From the NCBI GenBank assembly GCA_000708835.1, contig DF237136.1, positions 94,956 to 158,955 of the forward strand: a DNA stretch of 64,000 nt, written 5' to 3'. The position numbers and the translations under genes are program-made. Below are positions 9,101 to 22,341 of the stretch, one piece after another. Position 1 is the stretch's first letter. Each line of letters starts with the position of its first letter. The notes beneath the pieces are model-generated. The model was not told where the DNA came from. It ran no database searches and saw nothing but the letters and a program-made list of their open reading frames with translations. The DNA comes from Klebsormidium nitens (taxonomy: Eukaryota > Plantae > Klebsormidiophyceae).

Positions 9101-12100
9101 ACTGGAACTCCTGCCGCATAGCCTGCACCCGCGCACGGCCGACAGTGAGAAGCATGGCAGGCAAAGTGCCGCAACAGTAGTGACGGCCTGGCGACGAGAC
9201 AGGCACGGCCCTGCCAGCTTTCAGGAGGTGTCCAGCAGAGTTCGAATTCGACTTCAAGCGCGGCGCTTTCTCAAAAGAGCCGATTCAAACGAGCAGAGCA
9301 CCAAAAAACCCAACGCCGTGCTTCCTCGAAACACTGGAGCGTCATCCGACTCGTTTGGCCCGGACCTTGAGGAGCGCGGGGTCGATGTCCGCCTGCGGCT
9401 GCGGCCCGTCCAGGAAGATGAAGTCCCACACCGCGTCCGTCATCTGGTCCGCGCGCACTGCGCCCTTGCCCCGCCCGTAGATATCACCGTCCTGGACAGA
9501 CCGCCAACGCTTGAGGACGAGGCAGGCTTCCAGACAGCGGACATTAAAACCTGACGTTCGCTCCGGCTGGTCTACAAAAGCAAGCCGCTTCTTCTACATT
9601 ACGAAGCCGCATCCAAATCCTCCCTTGGCAGCTTGCAACGAGTACAGGCAGTCGTATCCCCGGACAAAATTATGTCCAGTCCAGCAAGAGAGTGCAAGAA
9701 CGCCAAGTGTGCGCATGACTGTCGCCGCACCGGCCAGGCTGGGGGCGCGTACCTGCAGGAAGTGTGCTACGGTGTAGTAGGCCATGTAGATGGTGGAGTC
9801 GGAGAGCGACTCAATGAGGTACTCGGGGTCCCATGGCAGGCGGCTGCCCAGCCCGAAGGAGCGCGAGCACGCCCACTGGTTCAGCCAGCTCAGCGTGTGC
9901 TCGAACGAGTGGCGCGCCTCGTCGCTGAACAGATTCATGCGCGCCAGGCACCGCTCCACGCGCGCCCGCCACTCAGGCTCGCCGTACGTCAGGTACCTGC
10001 ACCGAAAGCAGACCGAGCGCATTCTTCTTGAGGACTTCTTGAGGACGAATGAACATCACAGGGGATCCCCTGCGAGAAATACTGGTCCCCAGGAGATTCA
10101 AAGTACTAAGCTTGATAGTGGGGGTCTGCACTTTCGTGATCGAAGTAAGTTTTTGATTTCAAGTGCACGCTCGCTCTGGCGTTTCCAGGAACGAAGGCCG
10201 CCTGCAATACCTACTTGCAGCCTGTCATCTTGCTGACACCACACTCCCGCAACACGTGCCACAGAGTAGCCAACGATTCAGTCCTGAGTTGGGAAGCTAA
10301 GAAAATCGACACGAGAGGACGGCGATAACCAATGCACGAAAGATAGGAGCTTAAGGAAAGTTCCGCGGGTCTGCCGTTTGCGCGTGCCTCACCACTGGTC
10401 GGTGAGCGCGACAACGCACTCGTCCCCGGACCGCGAGACGACCTTCTTCTCGGGCTCGCTGTACAGGATGGCCCGCCCCGTCTCCACCAGCTCCTTCCGG
10501 ATCAGCGGCTTCGCGTCCTGCACGCGCGCGCCGGCGTGCGGGCCCACCAGCAGCGTGCCCTCCGTGAAACCCTGGCCACCGCGAGATGGACAGAGGCATC
10601 AGGCATGGTTCGAGCATGAACCCTGTCGTTGATCCATTGTGGACTAGCATTTGTATACGACTTGATAATCGGAACACCTGAATTTTGTAAACGCCCTCTC
10701 TCAAAGAGCTGGCTGTACACAAACAACGAGAGAAAGTGAACGACACAACCCGGGGCTAGCCCTCTTTCTCCACGCATGAGCACATCAAGAATGGTTCCGT
10801 GGCAGGTCGCGGTGGCCTCCCTGGCTGGGCCTGACCTTGAGGTAGGTGAGCCGCTTGGCCTCGGCGAGCTTGTCCTTGTCGTTCTGGGACTGGATCTTGA
10901 GCTGCTTGCACACGGCCTCGGCGGACTTGTCGCCGAACTCGGGGATGTTGATGATGGGCACCACCTCAAACGGCAGCACCCACTCGTCGCGCACGCCGTA
11001 CTTCTCACGCAGGGCTGCCGGTAAAAACACAGCCCAAATCGGGGTAAGCACCGGTCCAGAGTCATGCCAACGATCCATCTGAGAATCGCCCAAGATTTAT
11101 CCGAGGCTGCTCTTTGCTTCGCTGTAGTTCCGGCGGTCATAAGACAGTATTTGAGAACAGCTCGGAAACTTCATCGCACAGCCTCCAAGGGCGCTCTGCC
11201 TGACAAACGTCACATTACTCCCATCCAATCTGAAGTTCTCGAATCAAGAGCGATGTTCACTCAAGGTATGACAGCGCAAATTGCAGACACACACCGTTTT
11301 CTCGGACTGTCGCGCTCACGTTTCTTCTTCTTGAGGTCTTCCAGCGTGGCGTAGTCGTCGGGGGAGTCGCTGGGCACGGACGTGACGACGCCGGTGCCCT
11401 TGTCCATGAGGATGGTCAGCATGGGCAGGCAGTAGATCACCTCGTTCACCGCCAGCGGCGACCGCAGCGCCGTGCCAATCAGCTCCGTCCCCGTCACCGA
11501 CACCAGCTGCCGCGGCTCCCCGCGCACCTGGTGACAAGAAGGCGGGTCAGCCCGGGCCGATCAAAGACCGGCGCAAGCGGGCGGGAGCGTTGCCAGGTCG
11601 AAAGCGAGAGACGTGTGACCTCCTCTCAAGTAAGGAGTTTACGGTTTACTGCCAATTTTGCAGAAGAAGGGCATTAGCAGCCCGGATCGCCAAATTCTCA
11701 AGACACAGAGCCCATTCTTTGACACATTCTTCTTGTGGTTTACACGAATTTGCGTCAGCAAGCTTCGCAAAATGGATTTAACACGCTGAAACGTCGCCTC
11801 GCATGACCCATGACTACATCGAGGCGACTTGTAACCAAATACGTTTACCCTATCTAATAAGCGCACTTCGAGCCGATCCGCCTGACCTTGGAGTAGTTCT
11901 GGTACGACAGGTTGAGCGCCGCCCTTTTCGCAACGACGAACACCTCCTCGTCGTTGATCTCGAATGCGCCGTACTCCCCGTCTGGCAGCACCCACGCGTT
12001 GGTCTGGCCATACATCGTCTCCGGCCGCAGGGTCGCGGCTGCCAGGTACACGCGCTTGCCCGCACAGGCAGCCAGCTTCCCTGACAGGAAGAGCCGACAC

Positions 12101-14577
12101 GTCACTATGAAAAAACTTCCCCAGCAAGGCTAGAGTAGTGCTTGCGTTCATGTACGGAGTCAATATTTTCCAGAGTCAATGAGCAGTAATATGAGGCCCC
12201 TCCCTGGACCCTGTCAACAAGCCCGTTGAGTGGGGGAAATTTCGGCAAACGAAAAACCCCTTTCCTTCTTGTCCTAGCCAGCTCTACGAGATCTGCTCCT
12301 TTCGAATTTCGCAAGATTGGCACGGCGTAAACATATGCTCGGACTTTCAGAAACCACAAAAAGTTATCGTGAGCCTGGCAATCTGCGTCAGCAGTGCAAG
12401 AAAATTTTCGCCAGGGGAAAATTTCCGTTCCGAACGGCCTAGCGCTTGTCTCTGCCGCTGACCTGAGAGGGGCGGGATGACCTCCATCTTGATGAGCGTG
12501 TACTCCTGCGGCTGCACGCCCTCCCCCGACGCACGGTCATGGTCCGCGCAGGGCTGCTTGTCGAGCGGAGAAAAGATGGCGTACCGGTTGTCCTTGACCA
12601 CCCGGCCCTGCTTGTACAGCGTCGTCAGGTGCCACCGCACAAACGAGTCATAGTACGGGTTCACGTCTGTGGTGATAAACGAACGCCGCCAGTCCACGCC
12701 CAGCCCAAATGCCTTCAGGTCGTCCTACAAAAGCCAACCGGGAGGACCGCTGAGTTTGTTAAGGCGGATCATTTTCTGGGGACCAACGACAACCCACACT
12801 AGGGTGAAGGGCATTTGCAGGCGGATCGTCGCCCCGAAAGGGCCGACCCCTGCTGGTGGAGCCAGACATTTTGATCACAAGGATTCCTGTCCCACCAACA
12901 CACACCGTCCTCTGTATGAACAGTATTCAATTTCACAAGTGGAATCGCAAAACTTGGCTCGAAGCAAAGGGGATGCTGGTGCCATCACAAGAGAAGCCTT
13001 TGGCACTATCGAATGCTGCTCGTAGGTATATCCTGGTCTAGCCAGTGTTCGTTAGACTTACGATGGCCAGTGGCGGAAAGTACTCGAGCCAGAAGTTGGC
13101 GTCCCGGAAGCGTGCAATCTCGTCGTCCTTGAGCCCCAGCGATTGCATAATCTGCCATTGGTACTTGGCGGTCCCGCTCTTGGCCGCAGCCTTGGACTGC
13201 ACATGACGAGGTGGACCCGAAGATAAGAGGAGGCTGGCTGGCGACACAACTCAAATTGTCTCTTCCCAGGTCGTTTTCACACTTCAAGGCCATCCTTAAA
13301 AAGTTCGCACAGAATCCGAGGTTAGAAACTTCGTTCCACCCGGTGCTCCGATGTCGACCCCTCCTGCAAACTGGCATGGCATGGTCGTTCACCTTCTTGG
13401 TCTTGAACTTGGTGGGGTCCGCCGTGCTCTCCTGCGCCTGCTTGTTTGCAGCCTCTGTCTTGGCGGCCTCCTCCTCTGCTTGCTCCTGCTCTGTAGGGAA
13501 CTGGGGGGGCAGCCCAAATATGGTGATCTCGCGCTCCAGCTTGTCCGCACATGCCTGCACTCCGAGTCAACCAGCTATGATGGAAATATGTCACTGCCTT
13601 TCATTAACGACACCCCTCCAACATAAAACACTCCTCGAATAGGTGCTGCACCAGCAAACGCTCCAACCACTGTCGAACCCAAAGGCAGGGCACAGCATAC
13701 AAGTGGATTTCAAGTCCAAGGAAGGCATCGGACACATACCATGTCGGTAGCACGAGCGTTTCGGAAGAGATAAAGCAGGGAACCAGAGGTCATGTGGGCC
13801 TGATCCTCACCTTGATTGGCATGCCCGTGCAGTGAAATCCAAACGGAAACAGCACTTTCTTCCCACGCAGGCGGTGGTAGGCAGTGGCAAACTCAGCCTG
13901 AGGGCACAAACACTTAATCAGGTAGGTAGAGCAATCGGAAGTACACTAGACATATTTTCACTCCGTACATATGACGCTTGCAAGGACCAACTGGATCATA
14001 AGACAGCATTGAACTGTCTCCCGATGAAATCTTTCAACAGAAAGGGAGCCAACCACTTATGCGAAGCACTGCATTTCATAGATTTTCAACCGCACCACCG
14101 TTTTATGACAAGCACCACTGATTGTGAGTGGGGCGCTTACTTTGGAGATGGTGAAAGCATGCCCCAGATGGAGCAGGCCATTCATGTAAGGATATGGGAA
14201 GTTCGCAAAGTACTTGTTTTCGGGGTCTGCCTCCTCCGGCGCAGTCTCCTCGAATGCTTTCTCTTGTTCCCATCGAGCCTGCGCCTCTGCCTGGATCTTC
14301 ACCAGCGTGTCGCGGCGCACTCGAGATCCCTGGAAAGAGAGACGAAACTGGAACGAATGATGTTCCAACTTTCAATAACAACGCACTCATTCCTCATCAC
14401 TGTCCGCCACAACATTGCATAGTAGTATCCGGACAGTAAAACTGAAGCTCGATATACTATGACAAAAGCGCAGGACACACTTTTCGCCATGCTCTTATCG
14501 TGATGTCAGGTCGACAACTGCATTTGCGCTGGCATGATTGCCAATCTTACCCCCTTTTCGCCCGCCTTTTCCGCCAT
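6180..14577 (-). CDS. LARS1: Cytosolic (eukaryote-type) leucyl-tRNA synthetase, multi-exon
   Basis: Class Ia motifs [14 protein letters not shown] (~14150) and [12 protein letters not shown] (~8650), plus [10 protein letters not shown] and the editing-domain motifs [12 protein letters not shown] and [16 protein letters not shown]. First exon MAEKAGEKG starts at 14577; TGA at 6180-6182. Confidence 0.97.
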
Positions 14578-15035: not shown

Positions 15036-18000
15036 ATGACTGAAGCAATGACAGCTGATGGCGGCGTCGACGACGTAGATGATTTCCTCTTCATCATCAA
15101 CCCCAAAGGTGAGCGCTGACTTATCCGTGTCTAATTTCTGCATATGCATCCTGAATTGCTCGAGCCTAAAGATTGCAAGATCTGACCGTAACAATCTTTC
15201 AAGTTATGAGGCTGGGCGGAGGGTCCCTGTATGTACAGATCTGCTAGCCCCCTTCCTTGCAGGGGGCAATGGCCAAACGTTGAAGAGGTGGCGTCAATTA
15301 GCCCCTGAGCTTGAAGCTACTTTCAAAGATTTCAAGGTAAGCACTGCCACCAGACCTTGGGACTTTGCCGCCATGGTTTCTGGATCCACTTTCTCATGAA
15401 GGCTGGTCAAAGAACAGGTGCCCATGACATCCAGGTGACAAGTACCTGCTGTTGTTGCTTGCAGGTGGGGCAAGCACTAACGACTGGACCAGCCCATGCG
15501 ACCACTCTAGCCCGGGACGCATGCAAGAAGGGGGTGCTCGGGGTTATTGCAGTTGGGGGGGATGGGACTATTCACGAGGTGCGAAGTAGTGAAGGCGATT
15601 GTCGCTTGACCACTTGCGCTGGAAATGCACTTGGTAAAACTATCACGTGTGCATATGCCTCTCCTTGGCATTGGGTAAGCGACTTTACAGAGCTATGTTT
15701 TCTCAAATTGAACCAAGCGAATGATGAAAAGGGAGGCCTTGATGCAGGTTGTGAACGGCTTTTTTGAAGAGGACACTGCCAAAGTCGTCTCCAGCCGGCG
15801 AGGCAAGCGCACAGCATTGGGGGTGGGCTAGCTTTCTCATACACACAATGAGCTTGCTGTAGATATAGGCCGGTGAGCCCTTGTTTCACGTTACTATAAG
15901 AGATTCGACCGATGATGGTCTGCAACGATGCAGTGCGTATAGGTGCTGTACTACAATCTCCAAAAAGCAGAGCCCCTTGCTGCGAGCACAATCTCCATAC
16001 TTGTTCAGGTCCCCTTCAAAGCCATACGACTTCCATGATTCTTAAGATGGTGGTTGCAAAGGGCTTCACTCCACCCTTTGCAGATTGTCCCTGCTGGCAC
16101 TGGAAGCGACTTCATCCGAAGTTTTGGCTGGTAAGTGTGCGCATACCTTCACTTGCGTTCTCAAGCGCCACTAGCGGCAGGGATCGATACAATCCTAGAA
16201 TGAGCTTCTATCTAAAAGCTCATTTGCACTCGCTTCTTGTGAGACGCCAAAATATCCTTGCAACCAGATTCAAAGCACAGACATTGCAAGCTCGGCCAAT
16301 CTCAGAAGCTCTGCCGGCTTAGGCTCGCCTGACCCCAGCTGTGATTAGACACTCATAGCTCACTGATTGAAAATAAGTCTCGCTTCTTCATTGTCCAGGA
16401 AGGCCGACTCCCGGGCGGCGTTAGCGCGGCTTGTCCGAGGTCAGCGGAAAGCTATTGACGTGGGCAGAGTGACGTGTTGGGACAATGGCAAGATGAAGAG
16501 CCGCTTCTTCATCAACGAAGCAGACCTAGGCTTGTGAGTTGTGCGTCAAGTGTCTAGTGGCAGCCCAGGTCCGAAGCCATCAAAAACATGCCTAATGTAA
16601 TGAAACAGGAACATGGTGATTGGAAAACATGGTGTTCTGACGCGTTCTCATTTGTTGCTTACATCTTAGGCGCCTGGGCTTCCGCTCGGCCTTAGCTGCG
16701 AAGGCCGTGTTTGCAGGACGGCCCTCGTGGGGCGCGGCGTCCCCCCCTGGAAGTGGCTGGGCGGGCTCAGCTACTCGGCAGCCACCGTGCAGGCCTTCTT
16801 CTCACACGTCAACACCGACCTGCGGATGAAGGTCAGGACGGCGTTTCAAACGAAAACAGAAGCGGTGCAGAAATCCGAAAGCACTGCCCTCGTCTGCTCT
16901 GGGGGTTGAAGAAGGCTAAGCTGGCCGAGGCAATCAATCGTTGGGGGAGCCATAGCCTTGAGGCTCCTCCTAGTCGCTGCGAGTGATGCGTGATCTTCTC
17001 TGCGCTGGCCGCAGGTGGACGGCGGCCCGTGGCAGGCGGTGCCCCAGAACACGGGGACCATCGTCGCCAACGCGCAGTACTTTGGGGGCGGCATGAAAAT
17101 TGCGCCAAAAGCCGACCCGGCAGACGGCCAGCTGGATGTGAGTGCCCCGGGAGACGCAGAAGCGATGGCGAAATCAGTAATAACAATCTGCTGGACACGG
17201 CGGTTGAGATCCTCTCCGTGATTTTGTCTTCTATCACTGGGCCAACCTGCTCCTGAAAGTCGAGCAGTGGCACTAGTCGGGGTCTGACCTAGGTAAATCG
17301 TGCGAAGAGAAATGCAGTTGACATGCAAGGTTCAGAAATTGCCTTCGCAGGCCCTTCAATTCAGAGGGCGCAACGACAGATTTGTATCTTTCCTGTTCAC
17401 GCGACACGTCACAGGCCCCACGCTCCAGCCTGAGCGAAGGCCCGCACCTTTTCTTTTACAGAGGTATGAGCAGATTGAGCAGATTGGCCAGCGACGCTCG
17501 GCTCTGCCGTGGGGTAGCTGTTGACTTTGTTCCCTCCCCTCTGTGCTACTCAGGTGCTCGCCATGAGCCACTTCCGCTGGTACGACTTTCTCCGGAGCAG
17601 TCCTCGCCTGTTTGCCGGCACCCACATCGACCTCAAAGGCGTCACAGCCCTCAGGTGATGTCGCCTGGCCTTTCCTGCAACTTCTGCTTTTGGCCCCACG
17701 AAACTCTAATTGGACATGAGCAAAAACCTCAGGGGGCTCGCCCACCGTCTGCTCTTTGAGAGTGGCGGCTGACAGATTATCTGCACACAACAAAACTGTG
17801 TGGGCAATAAGAGACAAACAATTGCGCGGATTGTGTGAAATCGCCGCTCGGCCCCTTTTGGCTGAGAAGGGCTGTCTTTGCGCTCTGACGTGGGTCTGTT
17901 CTTCAGTCAGTGTGGGTGTCTCAGCCATCCGCGCCTCCTCCCGAAGATTGCAGTGCTTGCTGACGCTGCACCCATTTGTCGGCAGGGTCAAGACCCTCGA

Positions 18001-19078: not shown

Positions 19079-22000
19079 ATGCAATTGCTGCAGATAATGG
19101 CCGCCATGAGAGCCGTCCTCTGTGTCTGGCTGGTGCTGCTGCGCCTGGGCATGACTGGCGCCCAGGCAGTGTACCCCACCAACCTGTGTGGCTTCCCTGG
19201 CCCCGATGAATTTTTCCCCCTCCAGTGCTTCTATGACGACGACCTTACCAGCGCAAGCGGCTACGCCTGCTGCCCAGTAAAGTATGGGTGCTGTGGGAGT
19301 AAGTGACGCCGCTGCTCACAGCTTCTAGATTCTCAAGGCACAGCAAGAGGTGCGACAGGCTTTCATCAGAATGGTGCTCCTTATTGGAGTTTCCTGGCAG
19401 TCCACAGGGGTGAATGTGAAGCTCATGGATTACCGGGGTAGTCTGCATATGCTGCATAATGCAGCCGAGACCTTATTTGGCACTCAGAAGCTCAGTAGAA
19501 AGTGCCTTCCGCTTCCAAAGCTGGAACATCTGTTGGCATGATCAGCTGGTGATGATGATGTCAAACCTCCTTCTCGATTCTAGACTCCGCAGACAAGCAG
19601 TCTAAGTTGCATAAACTTCTGAATGCATGTGACAAATTTCTCTGAATCTTCATCAGTATCTGGAACACATGTGCCTCCGCGGATGCAGGTGTTGGATGCT
19701 GCCCCTACAGTGGTATAGCCAGACCCGCTCCCGAAGGTGAGCACGCAGCCCTGCATTCTGATTGGTTGGAAACCAATGTGCGAGTGTAACATGTGCTGAG
19801 AAAGAGCGCATCGTAAGATGGTCGGCTTGAGCTCGCCAAGTAGCACGGAGCGCCGCGAGGCCCAATGCACAATCTGCTTGACTACCTGCCTGCCATCACA
19901 GTTCGCAGGAGGGCCGTCTGGCGATTCTTCAAGAGCTATGCCCTTTTAGGTTTGCAGGGCAGTTCTGTGCCTTCTCTGCGCATCCCTCACTCATTCTTCC
20001 AATTTGGAGCCTTCGCCATGATGCTGACTTGGATTCTACTCGGTTAGCCCCCTGCTTCACCTTCAGAGAGAATCTGTGCCATTGCCAATGGGCCGGTCTT
20101 GTGTCTGCACAGGTTACTGTGGGACTGGTGCTGCCACTGACTTCCCCACCCAGTGCTACTTCAACAACGACCCTCTGCACCGCTATGTCTGTTGCGACGC
20201 AGCCGGCTGCGACGGTGAGGGCTCCACTAACAACTCTACCCAAGGAACTCAACCCGCAAAGTGGTACTCGTCAAAAGCAAGGCATACAGCGAGTGGTATG
20301 CAAGTGTAAATAAGTCAACACTTGGTCCACAGCAAAGCTTTGCCCTCACAAGCTTGCACGTAAAGTTCCGGGGTTCTTGGTGCGGCTCAAGATGCCGTCC
20401 GACACCGTCCCTTTGCAAGGGAGCAATCTGTCGCACAATGCAACCATTTAAGTTTTCCCCCCCCTTGAATGCTGATTATGATGGGCGGTATGGCAGGTTT
20501 CAACGCCGACAAGCTGACCCCGCACTGCAAGAACAACGGCTACATTCCGCCCGGCTTTGGGCTGACACCGCCTGCACCCCCTCCCACGCTGCCGCCCCCG
20601 GCAAAGGGAACCCACGGCAAGCTGATGGGCATCAACCGGCATGGCAGTCGAACTCTTACTATGCGCGGGAATCCCTGCTTCTATCCAAGACTCCGACCTC
20701 CCTCTGGACTTCAAGTTCCCGTCGAGCTTGACGAGATGATTGAGCAATTGCATAGAAGATGACATATTTAAGCACTGCCACAACAGGACGCACTGGCAGA
20801 AGCATTGTGGCAGGCATTGCAATGGTTGCCACGTGCCAAGGCTCTAGCTACTCTCTTCAGGGGTGTGTGGCACGCCAGGCGTGGCGGCATCCTTCCCTTT
20901 TCGGTGCTACTTCAACAACGACCCCGCTGGCCGGTACATCTGCTGTGATGCAGCTGGCTGCAACGGTGAGAGCATGTGGAATTTGCCGCCGAGGCTCGGA
21001 AACCTCTTGGACGGTATCGCCCGGCATTGTGGGACTTTCCGGAGTTGAGTCCAAGATTCTGACAACAGTGGTTTCGCAAGGGGCCAGGCGTAAAAGCTCT
21101 TGCTAGTAACTGTCAGGTTTTGCAAGATGCCTCCTTCGCATCTCTACTCAAGGCTTGCGTTAAGAAGCCGGCGGCTGTGCTATCGACGCAGCAAACTCCC
21201 AAGCCTCTGGGCTTCCACCACCACTCTAATCAGGAGGCGCTCAACCTCGAATGAGGAGCTCCGTCATCAATTCTCACAGCCGGTTGCGTTGCAACCATCT
21301 GATCGCATCCCCTGCGCCCGCACGTTGTTGCTGCAGGCTTCAGCTTCCTCGACGACTTCTACCCCAACTGCGCCGGCAGCTTCTACCTGAAAGAGAAACT
21401 TCGGAGCGGAAGCTCCCCCCTCATCCCCGCCAGCCACTACCCCTAGTCCCTCCAGCACCGGGCCGCCTAGCGGGCCGCAAGGCAAGCCGGCCTTTTGGGT
21501 CGTCCTTTCTCCCAGACGTTCAAGTTGCGTTGTTAGGCTGCATCTCGATTGGTAGCCACCACACGAACATAACGTTGTCTGACACCTCAGGTATTGCACA
21601 TTTGAAAACAACCTCGTGCCTTCTCCACAAGCCGTTGTGCAGGCGTTCCGCTGCGGTGAACGAAGAGAGCATGCTCAGTGTCAGCTTGAGCATTTGTTCT
21701 TCCGAGCCGTTAAAGCACAATGAGCTTTGGCTCATCACGTTACGAAGTAAGTGAATCCTGTCCTCTTTGCATCAATGATTTGGTGCTTTCTGTTGACCAC
21801 TCACACGTAGTCGGTGGCACAGGGGTTTGTGGGACGGGTGCTGCGGCCGCCTTCCCGGTGCGCTGCTACTACAACTCGGACCCGCAGGGCCGCTACGTCT
21901 GCTGCGACGCGAACGGCTGTGACGGTAAAGCCCGAGTGCACCCTCGCCGCCGCGCACCTTTCTCTCGATCCGTTCGTTTACGGCAGCACCGCGAGGAGTC

Positions 22001-22341
22001 TTATAGGTGCTCTGAGAATGTTTGGTGTGGAAGTTACTTTTTTTCGAGTGAGAATAAGTTAGCATTAGGCGTTGATCAGCACTTCGTCGATGGGCGGAGT
22101 CTGAGTGACCTTGTCCACACTCTGGGCACCTCCTGGGGCGATCGCTGTGATTCAAGCGAACCGAAGATGCATGCTCCTGCAGTCCTGCTCACCATCTCTA
22201 GAATCGAAGCAGAGGTGCTAGCGATTGCCGCGCTTGTGACTCCAGAGCTGACCAGAAAACCGTGTGTGTGCAGGGTTCAACCCTCCGGACAACTTGTTCC
22301 CCCACTGCAAGAAGAACGGCTACGTGCCCACCAGCTTGTGA
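19079..22341 (+). CDS. Secreted protein with signal peptide, four related Cys-rich modules and Pro/Ser/Thr linkers; family not recognised; contains one apparent 1-nt frameshift
   Basis: Exons 19079-19298, 19689-19736, 20113-20214, 20497-20616, 20861-20965, 21337-21481, 21823-21924 and 22274-22341 all join in phase 1. Repeated motif CGxxxxxxFPxxCY[FY]NxDPxxRYxCCDAxGCxG-FxxxDxxxPxC. Confidence 0.8.

Follow-up and report, generated by a model that had tools for sequence, protein, structure and literature searches.

A multi-exon Klebsormidium nitens gene of repeated six-cysteine modules and its genus-restricted family

Background

Does Klebsormidium nitens contig DF237136.1 (assembly GCA_000708835.1) hold, at 19079-22341 of the stretch analysed here, a single gene for a secreted protein built from four copies of a cysteine-rich module, and does that module belong to any described family? 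The stretch, which we call the window, is the whole 64,000 nucleotides (nt) from positions 94,956 to 158,955 of the contig, and all coordinates below refer to it; with a GC content of about 54% and introns, it is eukaryotic in character. The question was raised by an earlier reading made from the letters alone (the sequence-only reading), and every peptide which that reading quoted was found in the sequence at the place given for it. On balance, we favour the view that a genuine Klebsormidium gene of several exons lies here, and that its product is a secreted modular glycoprotein, rich in disulfides, of the cell wall or extracellular matrix. Exons 3 to 8 of this gene are reproduced by a transcript of the sister species Klebsormidium subtile, the module copies are under purifying selection, and the module has relatives in the genus Klebsormidium and no match among described families. 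A one-base frame break in exon 6 complicates this view and is weighed in the Discussion.

Results

An eight-exon gene was reconstructed at 19079-22341 (+). All 7 of its introns are in phase 1 and have AG acceptors, with five GT donors and two GC donors; the latter, after exons 4 and 6, share the sequence GCAAGC. Modules 2, 3 and 4 are each split across two exons (3 and 4, 5 and 6, 7 and 8, respectively), and the divergent module 1 lies over exons 1 and 2. The exons were analysed singly, and the K. subtile protein, denoted as P0001, was taken in place of the spliced product. The features of the locus are as follows.

19079..19298 (+), exon 1: start codon, signal-peptide-like segment and first part of divergent module 1; donor GTAAGT, phase 1
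19097-19168 (+), signal-peptide-like segment: hydrophobic core and A-x-A site, ending A-Q-A ahead of V-Y
19689..19736 (+), exon 2 (predicted): remainder of module 1, with two further Cys pairs, then a short linker rich in Pro; AG acceptor, GTGAGC donor, phase 1 at both ends
20113..20214 (+), exon 3: first half of module 2 (Cys 1-5); profile score 62.0 bits; aligns to P0001; in repeat family D1
20497..20616 (+), exon 4: second half of module 2 (Cys 6) and Pro-rich linker 1; GC donor GCAAGC at 20617-20622
20861..20965 (+), exon 5: first half of module 3; profile score 63.8 bits; identity to P0001 85%
21337..21481 (+), exon 6: second half of module 3 and Pro/Ser/Thr linker 2, the two parts in different frames; GC donor GCAAGC at 21482-21487
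21391..21396 (+), frame break: one base too many in an A-rich run compared with the K. subtile orthologue, from three-frame translation and tblastn
21444..21446 (+), premature TAG: reached after module 3 when the sequence is read as assembled
21823..21924 (+), exon 7: first half of module 4; profile score 70.2 bits; identity to P0001 97% (word search) or 92% (tblastn)
22274..22341 (+), exon 8: second half of module 4 and stop TGA at 22339-22341; profile score 28.9 bits; 87.5% to the P0001 C-terminus

The transcript was found by a word search in which the query was the natural 214-residue open reading frame (ORF) over exon 7, restricted to the module. This returned one protein, P0001, of 224 amino acids (aa), which is a K. 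subtile Trinity transcript product in EukProt. When P0001 was aligned to the window by tblastn, all junctions from exon 3 to exon 8 and the stop codon were reproduced, with exon identities of 79-92%. Modules 2-4 therefore belong to one mRNA in K. subtile. At the end of exon 4, the P0001 alignment (89%) extends to the junction and there is no GT within about 10 nt, so that the junctions after exons 4 and 6 can only be GC-AG. The two GC donors each come after the linker exon of a duplicated module unit, so the duplication of the exon pair probably carried the rare donor along. P0001 takes its start Met from the last 40 nt of intron 2 (window 20076-20112) and has no signal peptide; the K. subtile transcript thus either retains intron 2 or starts within it.

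Exon 1 is a conserved coding exon. Its orthologue, denoted as P0040, is a 76-residue ORF from a Klebsormidium-like contig of 12.8 kb. At 77% identity it has all the cysteines of exon 1 together with the A-Q-A/V-Y cleavage motif, and it starts at the Met equivalent to 19097. The ATG at 19097 is also the likely start in the window, having the better Kozak context (A at -3, G at +4), with a further in-frame ATG upstream at 19079. A metagenome scan with exon 1 returned no match. Intron 1 matches the intra-module intron of modules 2-4 in position (after G-C-x-G), so the predicted exon 2 is the expected second half of module 1.

The canonical module has about 55 residues, with the cysteine order C-C-CC-C-C, loop lengths of 11, 11, 4 and 12, and the pattern G-V-C-G..F-P-x-R-C-[WY]-[FY]-N-x-D-P-x-G-R-Y-V-C-C-D-x-x-G-C-x-G-F..P-x-C..G-Y-V-P. 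Across 48 unique copies there is no variation in the six cysteines or in the residues F, N, D, P, G, Y, F and P. Modules 2, 3 and 4 all keep the six cysteines in order, as well as F, N, D, P, Y, F and P of the invariant set; in module 2 an H takes the place of the invariant G ahead of R-Y, and the same replacement is present in the K. subtile orthologue. Module 1 is divergent and has eight cysteines. In order to score the exons, we used a profile built from the 48 unique modules of other family proteins. Exons 3, 5 and 7 scored 62-70 bits and exons 4 and 8 scored 23-29 bits; the first half of exon 6 scored 6.9 bits, being the divergent second half of module 3, which is divergent in K. subtile too. 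Exon 1 scored 10.2 bits, a value matched by 1 of 500 shuffles, and its orthologue P0040 scored 18.1 bits, matched by none of 1000. The linkers between modules hold T-P-P, P-P-P, S-S-P-P and T-P-S-P. The secreted-type protein of repeated six-cysteine modules and Pro-rich linkers that the sequence-only reading had proposed is thus supported for modules 2-4 and the linkers, with a signal-peptide-like segment in exon 1. An AlphaFold model of a single module has four beta strands and a core predicted local distance difference test (pLDDT) of 75-86; the model of the whole orthologue is poor (pLDDT 52).

The repetition at the locus is far beyond chance. The first-half exons 3, 5 and 7 constitute a 110-nt direct-repeat family of 3 copies, with a 31-nt core in 4 copies. 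With the in-frame exon DNA concatenated and counted by codon position, the GC content at third codon positions of the exons was 0.76, compared to an intron GC content of 0.52. Comparison of the canonical first-half exons gave a proportion of nonsynonymous differences (pN) of about 0.2 and a proportion of synonymous differences (pS) of 0.55-0.74, synonymous sites being near saturation, with a ratio of nonsynonymous to synonymous substitution rates (dN/dS) of 0.07-0.25. The saturated synonymous sites together with the low dN/dS indicate that the module copies are old and that each has been retained by purifying selection. No other gene in the 64-kb window has the module.

In order to determine how widely the module is distributed, we searched 1.84 billion (1.84e9) representatives using HMMER and a profile of nine family proteins (E<=1e-3). 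The search returned 26 representatives, one of which, a bacterial calcium-binding protein at 7e-4, is spurious; no enzyme-linked member was among them. All named family members are from K. nitens or K. subtile; the remaining family matches come from Logan or JGI contigs and are near-identical in sequence. A word search for the family gave 21 proteins. The annotated K. nitens members comprise at least 11 KFL genes (KFL_000010510, 000210210, 000240060, 000620300, 000620310, 001050120, 002300060, 002360050, 005790050, 006180020 and 008230020). Judged by its modules, the gene at 19079-22341 is a further, apparently unannotated, member of this undescribed family, which is seen in Klebsormidium only.

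The paralogues (KFL_000620300, KFL_000620310, KFL_000240060, KFL_002360050, KFL_005790050, KFL_006180020 and others, named 'EGF-like domain-containing protein' in UniRef) have this module, again about 55 residues long and with the same invariant residues, in 1-3 copies at the protein end and with Pro-rich linkers between them. Full-length relatives have signal-peptide-like N-termini followed by EGF-like domains (PF00008) or a weak LDLa match, and then the modules; the JGI contigs L001 and L002 are spliced metatranscripts in which a signal, an EGF-like region and modules follow each other. Whereas most paralogues have an EGF-like cysteine-rich region before the modules, the gene at 19079-22341 has its divergent eight-cysteine module straight after the signal peptide. 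Module 1, the divergent module of P0007, P0022 and L002, and the C-terminal module of P0016-P0019 are remote relatives with the same cysteine register; hhalign gave a probability of 95% for the canonical against the divergent type and 79% for the C-terminal against the divergent type.

Two further observations concern the relatives. P0016-P0019, P0036 and L002:1455-1604 have at their end a second module, about 45 residues long (C-P-x-V..N-S-C-F..H-x-C-C-x-N-P-D-S-C-G..C..G-N-Y), which is remotely related to the 55-residue module by way of the intermediate divergent type. P0032, P0033 and P0034, which are read-through ORFs from Logan or JGI, enter the module from an intron just before G-R-Y-V-C-C and continue through C-x-G-F; some paralogues therefore have their intra-module intron elsewhere than the gene at 19079-22341.

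Searches for a described family gave no match to the module. Pfam at E<=10 returned nothing for any exon or for P0001, and at E<=0.1 it never matched the module region in 16 further family proteins, where its only matches were to EGF and, weakly, to LDLa and DUF7933, all outside the module. The hevein/CBM18 (PF00187) and EGF-like (PF00008) profiles did not match the module. Sequence and profile searches of the PDB gave no significant match (best E 0.13 and 1.8). No fold match was found by Foldseek and a full VIA scan of 48,161 chains; Foldseek with the whole-orthologue model gave nothing, and the ESM Atlas gave no usable match. In the literature, we found no paper on the gene identifiers of the relatives or on the module. 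The sequence-only reading could not assign the cysteine spacing to the hevein, defensin, granulin or knottin families, and the Pfam, PDB and fold searches support a module outside the described families.

In exon 6, the frame of 21339 gives the match to residues 121-140 of P0001, and that of 21337 the match to residues 141-169. Linker 2 is thus in a frame other than that of the preceding exon half of module 3, which the sequence-only reading had overlooked. Because of the extra base and the TAG at 21444-21446, the window as assembled does not have four modules in one open frame. Four copies in one protein would require reading through the frameshift in exon 6; module 4 is translated only if the extra base is an assembly error. 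We considered a separate gene for module 4 and rejected it, as 21446-21823 contains no signal-peptide exon and the candidate short ORF at 21720 is out of phase at its end. Programmed ribosomal frameshifting is very unlikely, there being no recognisable slippery or stop-assisted site at the break.

Two neighbours of the gene were noted. An exon-sized ORF upstream, at 15357-15764 (+), matches the catalytic domain of diacylglycerol kinases (PF00781, E 2e-08) and belongs to an unrelated neighbour gene. The ORF pieces at 9594-13560 (-) resemble a class-I aminoacyl-tRNA synthetase of the leucyl type; Pfam gave no match on the three pieces tested.

Discussion

From the sequence, we infer secretion, disulfide pairing, proline hydroxylation with O-glycosylation, and a binding role for the product of this gene. 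The signal peptide would direct the protein into the secretory pathway. The mature chain would consist of one divergent eight-cysteine module followed by three canonical modules, each of the latter probably having a small beta core of four strands with three disulfides arranged around it. The short Pro/Ser/Thr-rich linkers would space the modules and are probably hydroxylated and O-glycosylated. Klebsormidium walls contain hydroxyproline (Hyp)-arabinosides (PMC5371791), which makes glycosylation of hydroxyproline in the linkers plausible. The conserved aromatic and Asn/Asp residues, presumably on the surface, and the beads-on-a-string layout suggest a binder or cross-linker of wall polysaccharide or wall glycoprotein. 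The EGF-like and weak LDLa regions that stand beside the modules in paralogues are partners typical of extracellular proteins.

Such an arrangement resembles that of the Solanaceous lectins (potato, tomato), which are chimeric hevein/extensin proteins, secreted, in which small disulfide-rich modules alternate with Hyp/Pro-rich glycosylated stalks and which bind multivalently to wall or foreign polysaccharide. However, Pfam, PDB and fold searches detected no homology between these lectins and the protein at 19079-22341, and the cysteine spacing differs.

Several points weigh against a four-module secreted wall glycoprotein. The signal peptide was judged by eye, and the frame is broken ahead of linker 2 in the window. 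The linkers are short and are neither the Ser-Hyp4 type of the Solanaceous lectins nor canonical extensin (Ser-Pro4) repeats, so that they are like hydroxyproline-rich glycoproteins in composition only. No structural neighbour from the fold searches supports a lectin or carbohydrate-binding module (CBM) role. Since the start Met of P0001 lies in the last part of intron 2, no transcript supports the joins of exons 1, 2 and 3. The sequence-only reading had considered that the exons might belong to separate genes; this is contradicted for modules 2-4, which are in one ORF in P0001, but the part formed by exons 1 and 2 has no transcript join to exon 3.

The alternative that survives best is that the gene is recently broken, a real one-base insertion in exon 6 truncating the protein after module 3 and exposing the transcript to nonsense-mediated decay (NMD). 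We give this a substantial chance, though one short of even. The frame break and the TAG at 21444-21446 are present in the sequence, and in the mRNA the premature stop precedes the last exon junction by 137 nt, which would make the transcript an NMD target. The two codons before the break read K-E, compared to P-P in K. subtile; these several changes within six bases point to a complex mutation rather than a homopolymer miscount. Also, word searches covering proteins up to 392 aa gave no annotated K. nitens protein for the locus. However, module 4, which lies past the break, is the best conserved (92-97% to K. subtile), and it has intact splice sites, the same stop and a low dN/dS, although a break could still be very recent. 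Furthermore, the published K. nitens assembly was made from 454 and Illumina reads with Newbler (PMC4052687). An approach of this kind is prone to single-base errors in such A-rich runs. Taking both sides together, an assembly error and a real mutation appear about equally probable as the origin of the extra base. In the first case the product would be a four-module protein of about 297 residues, and in the second a truncated and probably NMD-prone one.

A different function is also conceivable for the modular protein, namely that of a polyprotein precursor cut in its linkers to release small knottin-like defence or signalling peptides, as in plant multi-peptide antimicrobial precursors. The order C-C-CC-C-C is the one used by inhibitor-cystine-knot (ICK) peptides, the core is likewise small and beta-rich, and a conserved Q-G stands ahead of nearly every module. 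The module also had a weak match to the spider ICK toxin 2n9z (E 0.13), but this is not significant and disappeared when the family profile was used, and we rejected it as chance. Moreover, the Klebsormidium module is about twice as long as a knottin, with much longer loops and no significant sequence or fold match to knottins. No dibasic or otherwise recognisable processing site is present in the linkers, which are Pro-rich as in wall glycoproteins, and the fusion of paralogue modules to EGF-like and weak LDLa-like regions is an architecture of matrix proteins. We consider a precursor of this kind improbable.

It is highly improbable that the module belongs, as a divergent member, to some described family which sequence methods have missed (hevein/CBM18, EGF, granulin or one of the other small cysteine-rich domains). 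The first six cysteines of hevein also follow C-C-CC-C-C, with a short loop and then C-G as in the module, but the loop lengths of 11, 11, 4 and 12 do not fit hevein and none of the Pfam, PDB, Foldseek/VIA and ESM Atlas searches gave a significant or usable match.

Conclusions

Klebsormidium is a key model for the adaptation of green algae to land, and wall proteins are central to desiccation tolerance and filament adhesion. At least 12 genes with a strongly conserved, genus-only module for which databases have no description may thus represent an unstudied part of the Klebsormidium wall. Small repeat genes can also escape annotation through frame errors and GC-AG introns. Should the module prove to bind a wall polymer, it would represent a binding fold not described before and could serve as a probe. 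More tentatively still, the module may be a new genus-restricted disulfide-rich fold serving as a CBM-like wall anchor or cross-linker in an early land-adapted streptophyte alga, a possibility that we regard as rather doubtful at present. Were it true, a wall-building device would have been invented in Klebsormidium independently of the lectin/extensin systems of land plants.

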